From the sequence record NC_031127.1: DNA of 64,000 bases; one strand, given 5' to 3'. Positions 41,926 to 50,566 of the stretch are shown here, in pieces. The stretch's first letter is position 1; every line of letters begins with the position of its first letter. Below the pieces are notes generated by a model. That model worked only from the letters and a program-made list of their open reading frames with translations. It had not been told where the DNA came from and did no database searches. A program made the translations under genes and the position numbers.

Positions 41926-42588
41926 ATGGCGAAGCAAAAGAAAACCCGTAACAAAAAATATAACCCACAGCAAGCCCATGCAGAAACAGCCCGTATGGTG
42001 GTGCAAAACTCATTAGCCCGCATTTCCTTTATCGGTGCATCTAACCGCCGCATTCAACCCTACGGTGGTCGCGGCTTCCAATTCACCGTCAATCGCCCGG
42101 TACGGGTAACGGTCAGTGCAGCATTGGCTGAAACACTGTTCGAAGACCCACGGACATGGTCGGTGTGGATGGCGCATTATGCCGTTAATGCGGAAGGTGT
42201 CGTGGATGTGGAGTCTGGCGTTCTTCGCTTAGACGAATATACGTTGACTGACTTCACGGAAAATGTGGACAAGTTAGTGGAGCACATGAAACCTGAGCGC
42301 ATGATGGATAACCCGGAATACGTGGGCTACGCATTCTTTGCTTCACCAAACGAGCGTTACGATTTCACGCATGACACCACGGACGAACGTCTGATTGAAA
42401 ACTTCATGGCGTCGGGTGTGCTGGAGAAGGAGAATCATCTTTCACAACACGTTCTGAATGTTACCAAGGAAGAACTTATCATCATGCTCATGGCGGACCA
42501 TGCCAAGTTTGATACCAACATCAGTATTCACCATCGCGGCGAGGGGGATGATTACCACGTCGCAAATAAGCAAGTTATCGGAGAGTAA
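41926..42588 (+). CDS. Hypothetical protein with basic N-terminus
   Basis: MAKQKKTRNKKYNP; 220 aa. Confidence 0.75.
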   Translation: MAKQKKTRNKKYNPQQAHAETARMVVQNSLARISFIGASNRRIQPYGGRGFQFTVNRPVRVTVSAALAETLFEDPRTWSVWMAHYAVNAEGVVDVESGVLRLDEYTLTDFTENVDKLVEHMKPERMMDNPEYVGYAFFASPNERYDFTHDTTDERLIENFMASGVLEKENHLSQHVLNVTKEELIIMLMADHAKFDTNISIHHRGEGDDYHVANKQVIGE

Positions 42589-42591
42589 GAA

Positions 42592-43158
42592 ATGAAGTTC
42601 TGGGAGCGTTTTTGTCGCTTGTTTAAAGATGTCCCTGAGGCCCAGTCTGACGGTGACCGTTATACCCAAATCGTGCGTGACTACTTCAATGCAGGTAATC
42701 ACAACGTCGTGGAACTCTGTGATGCTATTGGCATGACACCACGCTCACTGTACTTTGCGGTTAACGACGACAACGTACGGGCGAACATTCTGCCCCGCCT
42801 CCCTGAAAAGATGCGGATGGAATTGCGTGATGAACTGACCGCGCGTGCGTTCAGTCGTCAGGCCGTCTCGTTAATTCGTCCGAGCACCGCGAAGTACGAT
42901 TTCGAAAACCTCAATGAGTTAATGGCACACGTACACCAGTTGTTCGAAACCTACCGCCTCGAACGTGGCGAGAAAGTGGACACCTCTATTAAGGCGTACA
43001 TCCACTCCCTTACACCACGTACCGTGCGTATCGCCTTCGTAGGCGGCGGTCACGAATTCAATGTGGGTATCATTGAAGGTATTAACGTTGTGCAGCAAAA
43101 CCTGCTTATGGTGAATTATGGAAAACTTAACGCCCGTGGAAATCGTCAATGTTTTTAA
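42592..43158 (+). CDS. Hypothetical protein with a possible HTH
   Basis: NVVELCDAIGMTPRSLYF resembles an HTH recognition pair. Confidence 0.65.
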   Translation: MKFWERFCRLFKDVPEAQSDGDRYTQIVRDYFNAGNHNVVELCDAIGMTPRSLYFAVNDDNVRANILPRLPEKMRMELRDELTARAFSRQAVSLIRPSTAKYDFENLNELMAHVHQLFETYRLERGEKVDTSIKAYIHSLTPRTVRIAFVGGGHEFNVGIIEGINVVQQNLLMVNYGKLNARGNRQCF

Positions 43159-44863
43159 CCGTTATGTCCACGGTCAAGAACTGGCAAAAAAGATGTTGGC
43201 GATTGCTCTGCGTAACCGCGTACGGGTAGCACTGCTACCCCTCGGTGAACGTGACAGTGTTCGCAAACAGAATCTGTTGTTACTGGGGCCAACTGGCTGC
43301 GGTAAAACTGCGTTGATGCGTGTATTGAAGACGCAGTTTGGTTTACCCGTGTTAGAGCTGGACATGACAGGCTTTTCTGAGACGGGCTACGTGGGGCGTA
43401 ATCTCAATACCGTGGGGACGGACTTACAAACCCTCACGCGTTCAATCGCTTTGCCGGACTGGTACGTAGAAATGCGCACCGGGATGCAGCTCGAAAAAGA
43501 CGAGCAGCGCTATACCCGTGAAGAACTCAAAGCGTTAGAAGAAAAAGAGTACGAAGTGGAAAGCGCTGCACGACAGGCGGAATGGGATGCAGGCCGTGAT
43601 GCTAAAAAGCAACACGAACAAACGCTGAAAGATTTAGGCGTGTTCCCGGACGACGATACCTACAATCATTATCGCATGGTCTATTACATGCGTGCGTTTT
43701 TAGTGGGGTATCATGCGTTAAAGAACCTGCCGTACGACGTCATTGATTTCGCGGACATTGAAATGATTCATGGGCAGAAGCTCATTGATGTCGCGAAGAC
43801 TGTGGTTGGTCTTGTCGAGAAGATGGCTGGCAGACCGATCAACAGTATCGATGATCTCAATGAAGATCTCAGCGAGCGCACCGATGAGATGATGGAGAAC
43901 AATCCTGCCTTGTTGGGTGAGTTCATGGGACTGATGGCCTACAACGAAGTGTTGGAAGCCATTATGGAACTTGGCACCGATCGCCTCAGCAGTAACCCGG
44001 CGGCGGCCTGTGTCTCCTCCAGCGATTGGTACGACGTCGCGCACTCTTTCGATGAAGCGGATGAACAGGATATCCCGCCAGGCATTGCTTGGCGTCCGAT
44101 GGACTTCACGGAGTTTGCGCTCTACATCTGTGTGATGTTGGTGCGTGACCCGGAAGGTCTGGAGGAAGTCTTCGAAGACTGTGATGACTTCACCCGCTTC
44201 GCCGACAAGAAACTTTGGAGCTACACCATCCCTAAACCGGAAGTGGTGCAGCCTAAAGGGAAGCGTAATGTGTTGTCGAAGAAAGACCTCGACAAGGTGG
44301 CGAACTGTAATGGTCGCGACTTCGTGGAGAACTTCGGGGTGGTGTTCTTAGATGAGATTGACAAACTCATTGAAACGGATACCACGGGAAGGACACACGT
44401 CTCCCGCAGCGGTGTACAGCGCAGTCTGCTCAAGATGGTAGAAGGCGGCTTGTACGCCGGGATTGACACCACGAACATTCTGTTTGTCGGTGCCGGTTCT
44501 TTCGCAGAAGCGCCTGTTACCAAACTGATGCCAGAACTGCAAGGGCGCTTTACCTTGCGTGCCGAGCTGGAACCGTTGGATAAAGAAGCACTGATTGCGA
44601 TTTGTCGAATGGATAGCAGTGAGTTCCATGCAATGGTTCGACTCTTGCGAATCGAGGGTGTGAAAGTCAACTACGACCTTGACACCTTTGAGTACATTGC
44701 AGAGAAGACCGTTGAAGCGAACTCGGTAGATAACCTCGGCGCACGGCGCTTAGCCGCGATTGTCGAAGCGTTGTTCCAAGACGCGTTGTACGAACCCAAC
44801 AAGTACACGGAAAAAGGTTACGACCTGACAGGTAAAACCCTGCGTGCTAAGGAGAAACCGTGA
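43118..44863 (+). CDS. hslU: HslU-like AAA+ unfoldase
   Basis: LTPVEIV, YVHGQELAKK, GPTGCGKT (res 57-64), ETGYVG pore loop, VFLDEIDK, GVQRSLLKMVEG, PELQGRF, NLGARRL. Confidence 0.9.
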   Translation: MENLTPVEIVNVFNRYVHGQELAKKMLAIALRNRVRVALLPLGERDSVRKQNLLLLGPTGCGKTALMRVLKTQFGLPVLELDMTGFSETGYVGRNLNTVGTDLQTLTRSIALPDWYVEMRTGMQLEKDEQRYTREELKALEEKEYEVESAARQAEWDAGRDAKKQHEQTLKDLGVFPDDDTYNHYRMVYYMRAFLVGYHALKNLPYDVIDFADIEMIHGQKLIDVAKTVVGLVEKMAGRPINSIDDLNEDLSERTDEMMENNPALLGEFMGLMAYNEVLEAIMELGTDRLSSNPAAACVSSSDWYDVAHSFDEADEQDIPPGIAWRPMDFTEFALYICVMLVRDPEGLEEVFEDCDDFTRFADKKLWSYTIPKPEVVQPKGKRNVLSKKDLDKVANCNGRDFVENFGVVFLDEIDKLIETDTTGRTHVSRSGVQRSLLKMVEGGLYAGIDTTNILFVGAGSFAEAPVTKLMPELQGRFTLRAELEPLDKEALIAICRMDSSEFHAMVRLLRIEGVKVNYDLDTFEYIAEKTVEANSVDNLGARRLAAIVEALFQDALYEPNKYTEKGYDLTGKTLRAKEKP

Positions 44864-45054
44864 CGTATTTGACGCTCGCAGTTGTTTGGTTGCTGGCTCT
44901 GGTGGGTGTAGGCCACTTAGCCAGTCAACTAACGATTAAGTTTAAGTGGGACATGGGCATCTCTGTTTTACTCGCGGCGGTAGGGGGTTGGGCTATAACC
45001 TTCCCCTATATCTACTTCGTTGTTGTACCACTTTATCAAAATATCGGAAATTGA
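44860..45054 (+). CDS. Small two-TM membrane protein
   Basis: 64 aa with two hydrophobic segments; GTGA overlap with hslU. Confidence 0.7.
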   Translation: MTYLTLAVVWLLALVGVGHLASQLTIKFKWDMGISVLLAAVGGWAITFPYIYFVVVPLYQNIGN

Positions 45055-45058
45055 GAAC

Positions 45059-45532
45059 ATGGAAAAGAAAACTGAACGTAACTTGATTGAAATCACAGGC
45101 AAGGGCGAAGACAACAACGGCAAGTTCTATTCCGTCGTGTTGTTAGACCAGTCCAAGATGAACGCTAATGGTCGTCAGTATAACGGCGATCTTGCGCATC
45201 TGGTGCGCGGTATCAAACGCATGCCGCGACTGTTCTGTGAAGTTGACCCGTATCACGATTACCGCTTCCAGTTCCCGGTAACCGATGACCGTTCTGTTTC
45301 TGGACCATGTACGGTCGACATGAAAAACGTTTGTGCATCTATCGAGAACATCCGTCACGATAAGATGAACCAGCGTGTGTCGGCTGAGCTGCGTCCGTGG
45401 GGCCCGCAGGCTTCGATGGTGCGTGATCTGTTGGACGGGGTCAACCAGAACGTGACCTTCGGGATGCGTGCGTTGGCAACCCCTGATGGCAAGATTGATA
45501 AAGTCATCACATGGGATTTGTTACCAGAATGA
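45059..45532 (+). CDS. Prohead-protease-fold protein, probably inactive
   Basis: NANGRQY, KNVCASI, LRPWGP, VTFGMRA, VITWD follow the T4 gp21/phiKZ gp175 motif order; catalytic H and S positions altered. Confidence 0.6.
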   Translation: MEKKTERNLIEITGKGEDNNGKFYSVVLLDQSKMNANGRQYNGDLAHLVRGIKRMPRLFCEVDPYHDYRFQFPVTDDRSVSGPCTVDMKNVCASIENIRHDKMNQRVSAELRPWGPQASMVRDLLDGVNQNVTFGMRALATPDGKIDKVITWDLLPE

Positions 45533-45563
45533 ATATCGCCGAACTGTTCTAATGAAAAAAAGC

Positions 45564-45587
45564 TCAGATAGATATTATCTTGATGAG
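45564..45587 (+). promoter_or_regulatory. Early promoter motif, copy 7
   Basis: tcagatagatattatcttgatgag. Confidence 0.7.
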
Positions 45588-45657
45588 CTTTCCATTATTA
45601 GTTCCAAGGAAGGTGCGTTTTACAATTACAATAAATTAAAATAATAAGGAGTCCGTC

Positions 45658-45834
45658 ATGGATAAAATTTATATCGTTACAGCAATCCTCTTTACCATCG
45701 CCTGCTTACTCAGCTGGCGTGTATCATCTAACATGAAACGTCGTAAGTGCCCACCGGGTGCTATCGCGTTTGGTGTTCAAGCCTGTGTTTATGGTTTTGT
45801 GGCCATCTACACCGGTGTGAAGTATTTCATCTAG
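45658..45834 (+). CDS. Small early two-TM membrane protein, 58 aa (not in ORF track)
   Basis: MDKIYIVTAILFTIACLLSWRVSSNMKRRKCPPGAIAFGVQACVYGFVAIYTGVKYFI; SD TAAGGAG. Confidence 0.8.
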   Translation: MDKIYIVTAILFTIACLLSWRVSSNMKRRKCPPGAIAFGVQACVYGFVAIYTGVKYFI

Positions 45835-45845
45835 CAGTAAAAAAG

Positions 45846-45873
45846 GGGCACGGAAGTGTCCTTTTTCTTTTTT
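45846..45873 (+). terminator. Intrinsic terminator (GNRA loop)
   Basis: ggggcac-ggaa-gtgtcct plus T tract. Confidence 0.65.
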
Positions 45874-45893
45874 CGTAAAATAAGGAGTATCAA

Positions 45894-46958
45894 ATGCCAC
45901 GTCTCTTAGCGTTTACCGGTGGAATTGATTCCACATGGGTGTTGCAGAAGTTAATTCAACAACCGTCATCCGATGGCGGTGAAGTGATTCATCCGGTGTA
46001 CATGGATTTCTATCAAGGTTCTCCGGCAGCCATTGTCGAGTTCCTGCTCGGCAGCGAAATCGCCCTGCGGCTGTTAAAGCACAACAAAGACAATTATAAA
46101 GAGCCGCTGGAATGGCGCTCACCCCCGTTGCAAATTTTCACCAGCTGTATTATCGGTCGCTCAAACGGAAACGAAAGTCGCCTGATTCAACAGGGTAACA
46201 CCGTGTTGGGTTTGGCACACCTGATGAATGCGGTACAAGCTCGCCATCCGGGGTCTACCGCCTTAACCGGCTGGAACAAAGCCGATTTCATTGAAAACAG
46301 TGCGCTGCAAGGCGAGTGGTCTGAAGAGGATTACCTGCGCCTGAAAAAACTCTACAGTGAAATGATGTTCTTCCAAGACCATCACTATCGCTGTTCTCCA
46401 CTTCTCACCCCGGCGTGGGATATGGAGAAGAAAGACATGTGGGATGCACTCCCGACTGATGTGCAAGAACTGATCACTGTGTGTTCAACCTACATGTTTA
46501 AGATTTACCATGTTAAGTCCGAGAACGCGCTGTACATCTCCTGTAACCCACAACACTTCGGTAAGTCTGTGCGGTATCTGGCCCGTGGGATTAACCTCAC
46601 GGCTGCCTGGCGTATAGCGATTGACGACGAGTTCCATCGCCGTCTTAACACAGACAACGTCCCGAGTAACCACTTCGCTGGAAGCTTCCCAAGTGAGTTG
46701 CTATCGTCGACCGAAACGAAGCACCGGCCATCACTGCGCATGCGTTCCGATGACCGCAACCTGCAAATCGAAGCCTACAGTATCGATGAGTGGAAAACGA
46801 AGTTTGACCATGTAGAAGATATGCTAAAGGTGGAACGTGAACGAGAACAAGCCGAGTACCGTGCCCAGCGAGAAAAAGAGAAAGCTGAAAGTCCGGACAG
46901 TGCAAATCGCGAAGTGGCGGAAGGCGAAGTCGCTGTTTCCAGCGGTGCCGCTGATTGA
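45894..46958 (+). CDS. QueC-like PP-loop ATPase, non-canonical
   Basis: LLAFTGGIDST PP-loop, PVYMD, LTPAWDMEKKDMW; no CxxCxxC zinc cluster. Confidence 0.65.
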   Translation: MPRLLAFTGGIDSTWVLQKLIQQPSSDGGEVIHPVYMDFYQGSPAAIVEFLLGSEIALRLLKHNKDNYKEPLEWRSPPLQIFTSCIIGRSNGNESRLIQQGNTVLGLAHLMNAVQARHPGSTALTGWNKADFIENSALQGEWSEEDYLRLKKLYSEMMFFQDHHYRCSPLLTPAWDMEKKDMWDALPTDVQELITVCSTYMFKIYHVKSENALYISCNPQHFGKSVRYLARGINLTAAWRIAIDDEFHRRLNTDNVPSNHFAGSFPSELLSSTETKHRPSLRMRSDDRNLQIEAYSIDEWKTKFDHVEDMLKVEREREQAEYRAQREKEKAESPDSANREVAEGEVAVSSGAAD

Positions 46959-47262
46959 TGTCACGGTTAAATCCGGTATCAAAGCCTTAGCCCCAACGTG
47001 GGACTTTCTGATGGTGTACAAGAACTCCGACAAAGGTCCCGAGGCTGAAGACGCCTACACGAAAAAATATAAAAGCAGAATCCAACAGCTCAAACAGGAT
47101 GACCCTGATGTGATGTTGGAACTGCTGTATCAGGATGAGATTATCCTGATGTGTTATTGCCCGTCCGGTAAGTTTTGTCACCGGCTTTTATTAGTTGATG
47201 AGTTCAAAGCCTTAGGCGATGAACACAATGTCGAAGTAACCTACGAAGGAGAAATCACATGA
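46837..47262 (+). CDS. DUF488-family protein
   Basis: IDVTVKSG, LAPTWD, YTKKY, ILMCYCPSGKFCHRLLL; GTG start with AAGGTGG SD inside the upstream gene. Confidence 0.7.
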   Translation: MNENKPSTVPSEKKRKLKVRTVQIAKWRKAKSLFPAVPLIDVTVKSGIKALAPTWDFLMVYKNSDKGPEAEDAYTKKYKSRIQQLKQDDPDVMLELLYQDEIILMCYCPSGKFCHRLLLVDEFKALGDEHNVEVTYEGEIT

Positions 47263-47651
47263 GTTTTGATATCAAGAACGACACCCTGCGCATCATTGTT
47301 CCGGTCGGCACTATTCCCGGTCGTGAAATCCCACTTTTTGAAAACGCCACGGCGTTAGCCAAAGAAGCTTTCGAAGCTGCGGGTTTCGAGAAAGTGGAAC
47401 TGGTTGAGAAACCGGCAGCGTTTTTCACCCGTGCTTACAGCGACAGCGGGCAGGCTTGGGCTGCACTGTATAACTACGGTTTGGTATTACGCTCGTCGTT
47501 TACGCCGTACGTCACCATTGAAGAACTGCAAAAGCACGCAGCCATCATCAATGTGTGGCATGACATCTTCAGCCACAAAATCCCAACGGATACACTGATC
47601 AGATTCTCGCCGACCCTGACCATGATTGCCGTTAACGATTTGGCCAAATAA
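47259..47651 (+). CDS. Hypothetical protein
   Basis: 130 aa, SD AAGGAG. Confidence 0.75.
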   Translation: MSFDIKNDTLRIIVPVGTIPGREIPLFENATALAKEAFEAAGFEKVELVEKPAAFFTRAYSDSGQAWAALYNYGLVLRSSFTPYVTIEELQKHAAIINVWHDIFSHKIPTDTLIRFSPTLTMIAVNDLAK

Positions 47652-47676
47652 ATTAGCACCCACAAGGAGTATCAAC

Positions 47677-48579
47677 ATGCAGGCTCAATTTATCCGCGTA
47701 CCGTTGTTTTCGAAAAATACCATCTCCGACAACATTGTTCTTCAGAATCTAATCGATACCACCCACAAACTTTATACGCTGGCGAAAGACAAGTTTCCGC
47801 ACATCGAGGGCTATAGCGTCCCCGAAGAAACACGCACTTACGTACTGATGGAGAAGTACGCCCGTCCGGCTTACCGCGCATTATCGACGCTGGCACCCGA
47901 TTCGGAAGAAGCAGCGAAAATCATTGCGTTATTGCACGAAGTCTATTGTGGTATCGCGGCGGACGATTGTGTAAACGTCGAACCGACGCCAGCGATGCTG
48001 TTGGCTATCAACAATCAGCACCTCCAGTCTGACATGTACATGCGTGCTGTGTTAGAAAGTAAACCTGGGTTCATGCGCAGGAGTATTGCTAACAACGGGC
48101 CGCGCGTTAAAAACCCTATCAATAAGGATATCACGCTTATCGGTGTCGCGGATATGCCTGCCGATATGCAAAAGGCTATTCTCGAAACGATGGCGCGGTT
48201 TAACGCAGGCAGAAACACGTTGTTGACTGGCCGCGACCGTAACATTATTACCGGTCCGGTGAGTTTCAATTTGAATTACCTCGGCGACGGTAAGTGGGAA
48301 GCCGATATCCACATTGTGGCTCAATCAGTTTCCGGACAGATCTGGCAGTTCATCATTGAACGTCTGAAGGCAGACACTGATTCAACCGAAGATAAATATA
48401 TCATCAACGGTGATAAAATGGTTATCGAGATGGCCCAAATGTTGCCGGAACGTCAGATGAGTGATGTTGTTATCAAACTGGTCACCAATGGTCTCAAAAA
48501 CACCATTATCCATGCCCTGTTGGATATCAGCAAAAACCGTTATCAAAATGAAATTATTCTTCGTTCCCTGAAGAAATAA
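47677..48579 (+). CDS. Hypothetical protein
   Basis: ATG at 47677 after AAGGAG, within track ORF 47626..48579. Confidence 0.8.
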   Translation: MQAQFIRVPLFSKNTISDNIVLQNLIDTTHKLYTLAKDKFPHIEGYSVPEETRTYVLMEKYARPAYRALSTLAPDSEEAAKIIALLHEVYCGIAADDCVNVEPTPAMLLAINNQHLQSDMYMRAVLESKPGFMRRSIANNGPRVKNPINKDITLIGVADMPADMQKAILETMARFNAGRNTLLTGRDRNIITGPVSFNLNYLGDGKWEADIHIVAQSVSGQIWQFIIERLKADTDSTEDKYIINGDKMVIEMAQMLPERQMSDVVIKLVTNGLKNTIIHALLDISKNRYQNEIILRSLKK

Positions 48580-48603
48580 GCAGTCCCCACAAGGAGTATA
48601 AAA

Positions 48604-49122
48604 ATGGAAATGAACTTTTACACTAAGCGAGAGTTAACGCACCTCGCAATGTTAAAACAACCGGGTATGGCCATTGACCCGGAAATCAAGATTGACCCGC
48701 TCAAAGAAGAAATCGCGTTGAGCTACCCGGAAGCCGAGTGGAACGACTGGTACTGCAAGGTGAAGATGGTGTCTTACGCGCTTCTGGAGCTGGCACGCTA
48801 CAACACCTGCAAACGTTTGCAAGGTTGGGTCTGGTATGTGCCCCGTACGCCGTCTCAGTTAGCCTTTGAGACAAATCCCGAAGAGAAGGTGGCTATCCGC
48901 CCAGTCATCCACCCTGAGCGCTTAGAGGTCCATCTGGAAGCGATTTGGAACCGTCCGCGTACGGAGCTGGCGGAAATCGTTCGCATTATCCAGCGGGTTG
49001 AGATGCCGGGACTGACGTGGGTAACCTGGGACTCGGTTGATGTCAACAAAAACTTCTGGGTATTAAGCTGGGTCGGTGGACCGTTCCATAACCACAACCA
49101 TATCTACCTGAACCGGAGATAG
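48604..49122 (+). CDS. Hypothetical protein
   Basis: 172 aa, SD AAGGAG. Confidence 0.8.
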   Translation: MEMNFYTKRELTHLAMLKQPGMAIDPEIKIDPLKEEIALSYPEAEWNDWYCKVKMVSYALLELARYNTCKRLQGWVWYVPRTPSQLAFETNPEEKVAIRPVIHPERLEVHLEAIWNRPRTELAEIVRIIQRVEMPGLTWVTWDSVDVNKNFWVLSWVGGPFHNHNHIYLNRR

Positions 49123-49126
49123 CCCG

Positions 49127-49402
49127 ATGCTTGACCGTCTGCTCTCCTTGATTAACAAACGTCAGCGTGACCTCTTTCAGCGTAACCTGCGTCTGGAAGA
49201 ACAAAAGCTGGAAGCGGAACAGCGTGTCCGTGCGCTCGAAAAGGTGGTGTTGGAAATGACCGACGTCGCGATATCGCATTGCGTGGTGATAAAAGCCGGT
49301 GTCGAGCGCAGTGACGGGCCATCCATTCGCCTGTCGACCGATACGCTCCATCAGCGCATGGTGGGCTACCGTACCAAAGTCAAAGAACTGGATTATTTCT
49401 GA
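49127..49402 (+). CDS. Small coiled-coil protein
   Basis: 91 aa, heptad-like LRLEEQKLEAEQRVRALEKVV. Confidence 0.7.
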   Translation: MLDRLLSLINKRQRDLFQRNLRLEEQKLEAEQRVRALEKVVLEMTDVAISHCVVIKAGVERSDGPSIRLSTDTLHQRMVGYRTKVKELDYF

Positions 49403-49728
49403 TGAAAGATGTAACGCCTTTTGATGCCAAGTCACTCGGTGGGATGTCGCCAGAGCAATCGCTTTCCTACCTCGCAAGGGGTGGGAAGATTCTGGATGAC
49501 ACCGACACAGCTGACCGGTTGTTAACCATGATGGTGCCCCTGCGTGATAACTACTACGAGATTGTGCCGCTCGCAACCGAGTATGTGGTACGCACGCCGG
49601 GGCGTGAATACGAAGCATTGAGAGCGCCTCGCAGCGTAGGCGGGGTGATTCTATTGATGCGTAACTTTAACGACGCTGTAGAGCGCTGTGGGCTGTATAT
49701 CGCCACAGGTGGAACGGGACACTACTAA
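49402..49728 (+). CDS. Hypothetical protein
   Basis: 108 aa, TGATG coupling. Confidence 0.7.
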   Translation: MKDVTPFDAKSLGGMSPEQSLSYLARGGKILDDTDTADRLLTMMVPLRDNYYEIVPLATEYVVRTPGREYEALRAPRSVGGVILLMRNFNDAVERCGLYIATGGTGHY

Positions 49729-50147
49729 TGTTTGGATGGCTTACACGACTGTCGAAATTGAAGCAGGAAAACGCCGAGCTAAAAGAGTTGGTGGTAACGC
49801 TGCGGGAACTCAATGAAACTGATGAACGTATGCTTGCATCCACCATGGCTTCCTTAAATGATGACATGATGCGCGGGCGCGTATGGGTCGAGTCATACCG
49901 GTGGCACATTTGCCGGATGAACGAATCCACGCAGAAGTACATCAAGGAATACGAGGAGTCGTATCAAAATACCGCCAAAGAACGAAACATCCACATTAAT
50001 CACGAACCGATACCGACGTTCGATTTCCCGACCTCACCACCGGACGAAATTGTTGTACGTCCCCGTGATAAGTACCGTACGCCGATTCGTGGCACAATAG
50101 AGATTAAAGATCTCAGCACGTATATTCAACCAAAAAAGGAACAGTGA
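49728..50147 (+). CDS. Hypothetical protein
   Basis: 139 aa, TAATG coupling. Confidence 0.7.
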   Translation: MFGWLTRLSKLKQENAELKELVVTLRELNETDERMLASTMASLNDDMMRGRVWVESYRWHICRMNESTQKYIKEYEESYQNTAKERNIHINHEPIPTFDFPTSPPDEIVVRPRDKYRTPIRGTIEIKDLSTYIQPKKEQ

Positions 50148-50566
50148 TGTACCAACTGACATTGTCAAACGGTTTAACAGTTAGCTTAGTTCAACCCACG
50201 GTTGAAGATGTGCGCAAGTTCACCCACAACCAGCGCGATGCCCGCACGTCGCAGACTATGTGGATTCTCAGCGAAAACGGTGAGTTTATCTTACCGAAGT
50301 TTGTGAAATCGGAGCGCGGTGAACATCTCGCGATTAACCGTTTTCTTGACCGGATGCAAAAGGTCGGTACGGAATATGGCTTAGCCGTGTGTACTGCGGA
50401 ACTGCCGGACGACCTCGTGCTGATGTCAGATGAGCTGATGCACCTGTCCGTTGAGTATTTGGCGATTATCGATAACTATTGTAAGTACCCGAATGCCCGT
50501 ACGTTCATCATGATGTCGAACATGGCGTCGCATCTTTGGAACGTGCACCACCGCAAGAAACACTAA
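50144..50566 (+). CDS. Hypothetical protein
   Basis: 140 aa, coupled, SD AAGGA. Confidence 0.7.
   Translation: MMYQLTLSNGLTVSLVQPTVEDVRKFTHNQRDARTSQTMWILSENGEFILPKFVKSERGEHLAINRFLDRMQKVGTEYGLAVCTAELPDDLVLMSDELMHLSVEYLAIIDNYCKYPNARTFIMMSNMASHLWNVHHRKKH

Follow-up and report, generated by a model that had tools for sequence, protein, structure and literature searches.

QueC-family enzymes and a divergent phage relative

QueC is a PP-loop ATP pyrophosphatase that turns 7-carboxy-7-deazaguanine (CDG) into 7-cyano-7-deazaguanine (preQ0). The motif definitions used here for the QueC family were taken from Libby et al. 2026 (PMC13329287) and from the Cap9-CdnD structure paper (10.1101/2025.04.06.647259). 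In the former, R99 of the VPxRN motif, Y131 of the YPDC motif and Y189 of QueC are described as essential, and the zinc motif, the arginine and YPDC as required or strictly conserved. In Cap9, the ligase of type IV cyclic oligonucleotide-based antiphage signalling systems (CBASS), R86, Y115 and D117 stack on or hydrogen-bond the deazaguanine (10.1101/2025.04.06.647259). QueC-family enzymes have been recruited twice for protein modification, in bacterial anti-phage systems (PMC13279940, PMC13329287, 10.1101/2025.04.06.647259). The present analysis concerns gp134 of Erwinia phage vB_EamM_Huxley (NC_031127, 240,761 bp, Machinavirus), a protein of 354 aa (YP_009293102) that RefSeq labels as hypothetical. 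Its gene lies on the plus strand at positions 45894-46958 of the window, i.e. the whole stretch of 64,000 nucleotides that was analysed, which corresponds with 100% identity to genome positions 62001-126000; positions given below refer to the window unless the genome is named. Among the PP-loop ATP pyrophosphatases the protein belongs to the QueC branch, from which it has diverged strongly and without the zinc site; proteins of its kind occur in jumbo phages that form a nucleus (phiKZ/SPN3US-like) and in phages related to them. Its gene overlaps that of gp135, a protein with a DUF488-N3a domain.

Family placement and predicted fold of gp134

When gp134 alone was used as the query, nothing was matched in Pfam (E<=0.1), in the PDB sequences or in PADLOC (E<=10), and NCBIfam returned a single chance-level match (E 0.14, 10.9 bits). 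The protein does match phrog_8825, a cluster with no known function. Five homologues were recovered by a word-based search and 33 when the HMMER profile was run exhaustively against 1.84 billion representatives, so that the family is rare. The profile made from an alignment of 35 family sequences matched Cap9 (E 7e-5), the nitrile synthetase ArtA (E 0.002) and QueC (E 0.008-0.02), as well as TilS/MesJ and LarE, with matches that run through the N-terminal 40-55 residues. PF06508 (QueC) is matched weakly by 14 of the 35 members (best E 2.4e-6), more than any other family. The PADLOC 'QueC' model is matched weakly by six of them (best E 1e-4) and the PADLOC QatC model by none, gp134 included. 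An hhalign comparison with E. coli QueC gave a probability of 92.8% over 54 columns.

An AlphaFold model of gp134, computed on the family alignment, reached a mean predicted local distance difference test score (pLDDT) of 87.6 and a predicted template modelling score (pTM) of 0.87, and its predicted fold is Rossmann-like alpha/beta of the HUP class. Cap9 is both the best structural and the best profile match. Outside gp134's own family, the matches in a viral structure library are mostly phage proteins annotated as QueC, and the look-alikes in the ESM Atlas all belong to viral clusters, some of which bear PF06508. The likeness to QueC, invisible to direct sequence search, is thus supported by the family profile, hhalign and the fold. 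The same comparisons with QueC and Cap9 support the first-pass annotation of this stretch, made from the sequence alone, which had proposed a non-canonical, adenylating PP-loop enzyme of the QueC family. YcfA, the 6-thioguanine enzyme of the host species, was considered as kin of gp134 and dropped; its structural Z score tied with those of other PP-loop families, and it was missing from the profile-to-PDB sequence matches of the gp134 family.

Catalytic motifs retained and substrate motifs lost

The N-terminus of gp134 reads MPRLLAFTGGIDST and contains an intact SGGxDS-type, pyrophosphate-binding PP-loop, T8-G-G-I-D-S13 (45915-45932, plus strand), of which G10 and S13 are invariant in 35/35 sequences of the family alignment. 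Because this loop and residues E49, D131, P173 and K179 (K165 in QueC) are conserved family-wide, the catalytic site looks active. Retained relative to QueC and Cap9 are the PP-loop, an apparent D-F-x-Q...E element after strand 2, the G...D of strand 4 (G126, D131) and a P-x-W-x3-K element. At the position of QueC YxQxHxxE, gp134 has F39-Y-Q41...E49; E49 is nearly invariant and Q41 is unconserved in the wider family. F-x-Q...E is kept in the close clade.

Three features of QueC and Cap9 are lost, namely the zinc motif, the VPxRN arginine and YPDC, and these are the positions that bind the deazaguanine in Cap9 and are essential in QueC. gp134 contains four cysteines (C85, C166, C197 and C217) and no CxxC, and none of the four is conserved, either in homologues at 42-90% identity or across the 35-sequence family. 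At VPxRN, gp134 reads I-Q-Q-G-N, with glycine in place of the essential R99. This site forms a family-specific QQxN motif (Q99-Q100-G-N102; 46188-46199, plus strand), whose QQ is invariant or nearly so. A second motif, GWxKxDxxE (G126-W-N-K-A-D131-F-I-E134; 46269-46295, plus strand), aligns with G-x-x-E-T-D-F-S-G of QueC. YPDC, which comes next in QueC, is replaced in gp134 by N-S-A-L, and no aromatic-x-D-C is conserved in the family. Gained and invariant or nearly so across the family are Q99-Q100, G126-W127-x-K-x-D131-x-x-E134, W175, K224 and G232. Both the intact TGGIDS loop and the missing CxxCxxC zinc cluster of the first-pass annotation are thereby confirmed.

In the model, a core of approximately residues 1-240 would carry a beta-hairpin subdomain in place of the zinc lid and be followed by a C-terminal helix (residues 297-332) and a disordered acidic tail; the long helix and the tail appear to be additions of the SPN3US-like clade. 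Judged from motifs and predicted structure, the gp134 branch is a QueC scaffold that has apparently retained its ATP site, with other elements now standing in for the zinc lid and the pocket for the deazaguanine.

Absence of a deazaguanine pathway

Searches of the whole 240,761-bp genome gave no match at E<=10 to PF06508 (QueC), PF01702 (tRNA-guanine transglycosylase, TGT/DpdA), PF01227 (FolE) or PF01242 (QueD); control genomes were matched in the same searches. The search for QueE in the whole genome yielded only two radical S-adenosylmethionine (SAM) open reading frames (ORFs), neither of which is QueE. They are adjacent (L003 and L004, 448 and 297 aa) and lie at genome positions 137526-141889, 12-15 kb past the end of the window. 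The 448-aa ORF has its best match in the CXXX-repeat peptide-maturase family (127 bits) and also matches PapB-type models, and the 297-aa ORF scores 35 bits with the QueE model against a cut-off of 260; by these profile matches, both are assigned to the peptide-maturase type. The lack of folE, queD, queE and dpdA that had been noted for the window therefore extends to the entire genome, and no full preQ0 pathway was found in its remainder.

These data bear on the simplest explanation, that gp134 is an ordinary QueC which turns host-made CDG into preQ0. Its fold does place gp134 in the QueC branch, and GenBank labels the relatives in phages PA1C, AerS_266 and RSL2 as 7-cyano-7-deazaguanine synthase. 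Unlike canonical QueC (PF06508; PDB 3bl5, 2pg3), however, gp134 stays below the Pfam gathering threshold and has neither C(x)8CxxCxxC nor the VPxRN arginine nor YPDC, all of them required or strictly conserved in QueC (PMC13329287). The canonical setting of queD, queE, folE or a TGT/DpdA gene is likewise missing from the Huxley genome, so that there is no DpdA/TGT to use preQ0, and ordinary QueC activity is considered highly improbable. As the zinc lid and the CDG-holding residues are lost and deazaguanine genes are absent from the phage, a substrate other than a deazaguanine is favored.

Comparison with Cap9 and QatC

Cap9 (PDB 9nto_B) keeps the zinc site, RN and YxDC, whereas gp134 has none of the three, is 170 residues longer and is encoded by a phage. 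A TGT-family (Cap10-like) partner was not matched in the Huxley genome, and a CD-NTase and Cap11 context was not seen, with no search dedicated to CD-NTase. QatC (PDB 9y01_B) keeps a variant zinc motif and motifs of its own (WxR, RxRxxxF, HP and others), as listed in PMC13329287, and none of these was seen in gp134. Complementation of an E. coli queC deletion by QatC has already been shown to fail. The neighbours qatA, qatB and qatD are not present beside gp134, which is surrounded by phage structural genes, a protease gene and genes without known function, and no Cap9- or QatC-type partner for it was found.

A ligase of the Cap9/QatC kind would modify a protein of the phage or the host, at a lysine or the N-terminus, with a small molecule that bears a carboxylate, for which CDG from the host is a candidate. 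The modification would serve regulation or counter-defence; in one version, the cofactor on which type IV CBASS or QatABCD depends would be drained or mimicked. The rank of Cap9 as best structural and profile match speaks for this explanation, as do the two precedents of protein modification by the QueC family. In the close clade, F-x-Q...E recalls the Y/FxQ(x)5E of Cap9, and the modelled extra C-terminal elements could bind a protein. Against it, the zinc motif is present in Cap9 as well as in QatC, and RN and YxDC are present in Cap9; gp134 has none of these. The protein also has no PADLOC match, its family shows six weak 'QueC' matches in 35 and no QatC match, a TGT/Cap10 gene is absent, and an N-terminal glycine motif occurs in no neighbouring protein. 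Such a protein ligase is therefore judged unlikely, and counter-defence, which the first-pass annotation had put forward as a possibility, is speculative.

Relatives of gp134 in phages

All examined contexts of the enzyme are large phages, i.e. SPN3US, phiEaH2, Asesino, Kwan, Caitlin, ChrisDB, Proteus phage 7 and EC001, together with Miami, EL, pEa_SNUABM_48, AerS_266 and metagenomic jumbo-phage contigs; IMG/VR gave eight loci. A search with close-family patterns in 185,579 bacterial and archaeal species genomes gave 95 pattern matches and no relatives, i.e. no cellular homologue of gp134. The homologues of gp134 and gp135 in SPN3US are gp119 and gp120. No paper on the gp134 family was found; in GenBank, a few distant relatives bear the label 'QueC-like'. 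The 2026 survey of PF06508 (PMC13329287) describes no virus-specific cluster in its accessible parts; since gp134 falls below the PF06508 threshold, its branch lies outside that survey.

Chimallivirus QueC-like proteins, namely those of PA1C (QBX32403), AerS_266 (WNV45795), EL (gp200) and Miami (gp102), belong to the same viral radiation as gp134 and match its family profile at E 1e-16 to 1e-67. Like gp134 they are orphans with no preQ0 pathway nearby. The proteins of AerS_266 and PA1C are sequence intermediates. That of AerS_266 passes PF06508 with 27.6 bits and has no cysteine cluster. Unlike gp134, the PA1C protein (L025, 4992-5729; 245 aa) passes PF06508 (42.9 bits) and keeps C(x)8CxxCxxC, and it has neither RN nor YPDC; from its sequence it appears to stand midway in the evolution from QueC to the family without zinc. 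Outside the SPN3US-like clade, the enzyme gene lies near genes for thymidylate kinase (EL), dCTP deaminase and a ligase (PA1C), RNase HI and a ligase (AerS_266) or dihydrofolate reductase (Miami). These neighbours of nucleotide and DNA metabolism are a weak hint of a nucleotide substrate.

The DUF488-N3a protein gp135

The gene of gp135 (46837-47262, plus strand) encodes a protein that matches Pfam PF22751 (DUF488-N3a) with 42.4 bits (cut-off 27, E 1e-10). In its predicted active-site loop, C106-Y-C108-P-S-G111-K-F113-C114-H115-R116 (47152-47184, plus strand), residues C106, C108, G111, F113, C114, H115 and R116 are invariant in 14 chimallivirus homologues, which also share invariant T.Q, K.G, AP, Y and C-terminal GE positions. 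Among them is the DUF488-N3a protein gp151 of phiKZ (L036, NC_004629, 3826-4176), in which the CxC..G.FCHR motif is complete and which has the T.Q, K.G, AP and GE positions in common with gp135. The Kwan homologue gp150 (L013, NC_031010, 6465-6815; hmmsearch E 2e-46) is labelled 'putative GIY-YIG catalytic domain protein', and the Wellington homologue is mislabelled in the same way.

The RefSeq start of gp135 at 46900 cuts off the invariant T21 of the N-terminal DUF488-N3a strand, and in relatives the start lies 5-24 codons upstream of the invariant T (ATG in SPN3US, phiEaH2, Kwan, phiKZ and Caitlin). For these reasons gp135 probably comprises 141 aa and starts at the GTG at 46837, which is preceded by the Shine-Dalgarno sequence AAAGGTGG. 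It would then overlap gp134 by 122 nt in the +1 frame, and positions 46837-46958 would be dual-coding. The gp135 homologue of relative L005 has likewise been shortened by gene callers. A +1 frameshift fusion of gp134 and gp135 was rejected. In relatives, translation can begin at a normal ATG a short way ahead of the N-terminal strand that is conserved in DUF488, and in Huxley the GTG at 46837 has its own Shine-Dalgarno sequence. Also rejected was a functional motif in the disordered tail of gp134, D-x4-E-V-A ('EVA'), whose apparent conservation results from dual coding; it is the shadow of A-K-W-R of gp135 in the other frame.

DUF488 proteins, gp135 among them, are taken here to belong to the rhodanese-phosphatase superfamily. 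Burroughs and Aravind 2023 (NAR Genom Bioinform) are said to have predicted that a clade of RapZ-C, DUF488 and DUF4326 acts on sugar phosphates, derivatives of nicotinamide adenine dinucleotide (NAD) and nucleic-acid ends. A single-sequence AlphaFold2 model of gp135 was unusable (pLDDT 39), and its putative rhodanese-phosphatase-type Rossmannoid fold is based on the match to Pfam together with the literature. PMC9503650 places DUF4326 in the rhodanese-phosphatase superfamily and predicts for it an action on sugar phosphates, derivatives of NAD and the ends of nucleic acids. Weak PADLOC candidate-defence matches were obtained for gp135 (46900-47259) with PDC-M45C (E 3e-4) and PDC-M19A (E 2e-3). 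At the level of sequence, these point to DUF488-like domains in candidate bacterial defence systems too.

Linkage of the enzyme and DUF488-N3a genes

The two genes directly abut or overlap in Huxley, Machina, Parshik, pEa_SNUABM_43/42/10/6/4/8/9/29, Caitlin, ChrisDB, phiEaH2, Stratton, Asesino, SPN3US (gp119/gp120), the SPFM and SPLA phages, EC001, JN03, Proteus phage 7 and three metagenomic contigs, with overlaps of 56-122 nt. No terminator was detected between gp134 and gp135 in a consensus scan of 42000-50500. In Kwan, Wellington, pEa_SNUABM_11 and L032 the genes are 2.5-2.8 kb apart, with an HslU-like gene between them in Kwan. Hidden Markov model searches of whole records found the enzyme and no DUF488-N3a in EL and Miami, DUF488-N3a and no enzyme in phiKZ (gp151) and 201phi2-1, and both genes at a distance of 116 kb in pEa_SNUABM_48. 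Within 6 kb of the enzyme gene, DUF488-N3a is missing from L009/L010/L033, L011, L034, L035, AerS_266 and PA1C. The gene downstream of the enzyme in the distant relatives L008, L009 and L011 was considered as a DUF488 gene and rejected by Pfam and alignment. By tblastn, 295 phage records carry DUF488-N3a versus 73 with the enzyme, and in unrelated 140-kb Vibrio and Pseudoalteromonas phages DUF488-N3a stands among genes without known function; its overlap with a PP-loop gene is confined to SPN3US-like phages. In a maximum-likelihood tree of 23 enzyme sequences, all adjacent cases form one clade (support 81/93) that is sister to the cases within 3 kb, and the linkage therefore arose once.

Based on gene arrangement, the homologues of gp134 and gp135 look co-transcribed in one monophyletic SPN3US-like clade, and DUF488-N3a is probably a lineage-specific companion of the enzyme and not its obligate partner. 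The DUF488 neighbour with CYC..FCHR described by the first-pass annotation is real, and its pairing with the QueC-like gene holds for the SPN3US-like clade; in EL, Miami, phiKZ, 201phi2-1 and pEa_SNUABM_48 the pair is not linked. The further proposal that gp134 works with DUF488 is weakened by this co-occurrence check across phages.

A functional pair would nevertheless account for some of the data. In such a two-enzyme module, gp134 would adenylate a group on a nucleic-acid end, a nucleotide or an ADP-ribose-type sugar phosphate and gp135 would process the same molecule by transfer or removal of a phosphate or sugar phosphate, giving a new modification of nucleic acids or nucleotides in SPN3US-like phages. 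The 56-122 nt overlap, the missing terminator and the coupling of gp135 itself to gp136 (see below) fit this picture, as do the adjacency in 9/9 sampled members of the clade, the distance of less than 3 kb in Kwan and L032, and the substrates predicted for the clade of RapZ-C, DUF488 and DUF4326, which PMC9503650 gives for DUF4326. Yet some related phages have just one of the two genes, whichever it is, or have both at a great distance in one genome, and DUF488-N3a is four times more widespread and occurs alone in the unrelated 140-kb phages. Synteny in the clade is generally conserved, so an adjacency of single origin is weak evidence, and no fusion protein was present among 33 family representatives. 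The module is regarded as a tentative alternative, of lower probability than independent action.

Proposed function

The explanation that we favor, with a probability of roughly 0.65, is that gp134 is an active adenylate-forming enzyme which acts on the carboxylate or carbonyl group of a non-deazaguanine substrate, with attack by an amine and without preQ0 formation, and that gp135 is an independent cysteine enzyme co-expressed with it in one lineage. ATP would be bound at the TGGIDS loop, and the carboxylate or carbonyl oxygen of the substrate would be adenylated with release of pyrophosphate. A nitrogen nucleophile may then attack the acyl-AMP to yield an amide or amidine. The substrate would be a nucleotide, a metabolite or a group on a protein, and the reaction would not serve preQ0 synthesis. 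gp135, with its DUF488-N3a domain, would be an enzyme in its own right that depends on cysteine; both proteins would be expressed together in SPN3US-like phages and may serve one process there.

The lack of a conserved cysteine in the gp134 family speaks against a persulfide mechanism such as that of ThiI, MnmA or TtuA, and in favor of attack by nitrogen, as in QueC, Cap9, NadE and GMP synthase. The same observation bears on a ThiI-like thiolation pair, in which gp134 would adenylate a nucleobase carbonyl and gp135, as a member of the rhodanese superfamily, would supply persulfide sulfur for a thio-base in tRNA, DNA or nucleotides. Beyond the missing cysteine, which ThiI, MnmA and TtuA have, no cysteine desulfurase was found in the stretch examined and the two genes are distributed independently. 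Family members also occur in phages whose hosts are not expected to carry the ycf cluster. A thiolation pair is considered highly improbable.

Several points weigh against independent action of gp134 on a non-deazaguanine substrate. The equivalences of motifs between gp134 and QueC or Cap9 come from alignments at 14-20% identity and from predicted structure. It is possible that host-made CDG, bound in a new way, is the substrate after all. The overlap of stop and start has been retained in phages of Erwinia, Salmonella, Proteus and E. coli with no more than 32-50% identity between their enzymes, which in terms of gene arrangement is compatible with a real functional link between gp134 and gp135. 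Finally, no literature on SPN3US gp119/gp120 or phiKZ gp151 was found.

Gene organization around gp134

The gene of gp134 is preceded by a terminator-like hairpin of 11 pairs, GC-containing and followed by a T-run (45841-45876, plus strand), which lies between gp133 and gp134 and is the clearest intrinsic-terminator-like site in the scanned region. This arrangement suggests that gp134 opens a new transcription unit or sits behind an attenuator. A strong Shine-Dalgarno sequence, TAAGGAGT (45882-45889, plus strand), is located 5 nt ahead of the ATG. Downstream, the ATG of gp136 (47259-47651, plus strand; 130 aa, phrog_20829, no known domain) overlaps the stop codon of gp135 (ATGA) and has the Shine-Dalgarno sequence GAAGGAGA ahead of it, so that gp135 and gp136 appear translationally coupled; gp136 is absent from relative L005. 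Further genes without known function follow, and then virion genes.

Upstream lie the genes of an HslU-like AAA+ ATPase (gp130, 43118-44863), a short S80-type 'head maturation protease' paralogue (gp132, 45020-45532) and a 58-aa membrane ORF (gp133). The protease paralogue (157-170 aa) and the HslU-like ATPase accompany the enzyme and DUF488 genes in Huxley, L005 and Kwan in varying order; at the SPN3US locus the protease paralogue is present and the HslU-like gene absent.

Implications for jumbo phages

Protein-nucleobase conjugation by bacterial QueC-family enzymes is known from two anti-phage systems, and gp134 represents a phage-borne branch of the same scaffold. It is a speculative and rather improbable thought that nucleus-forming jumbo phages use this remodelled ligase to attach an acyl or nucleobase group to a protein, a nucleotide or a nucleic-acid end, with DUF488-N3a in the SPN3US-like phages, as a phage counterpart of Cap9/QatC deazaguanylation that serves counter-defence or a new modification. 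The phyletic pattern warns against taking adjacency to DUF488 as a two-component system. If the substrate of gp134 were found, the range of reactions known for this scaffold would grow, and a step of modification or counter-defence might come to light in model jumbo phages, for which SPN3US gp119/gp120 are the corresponding proteins.

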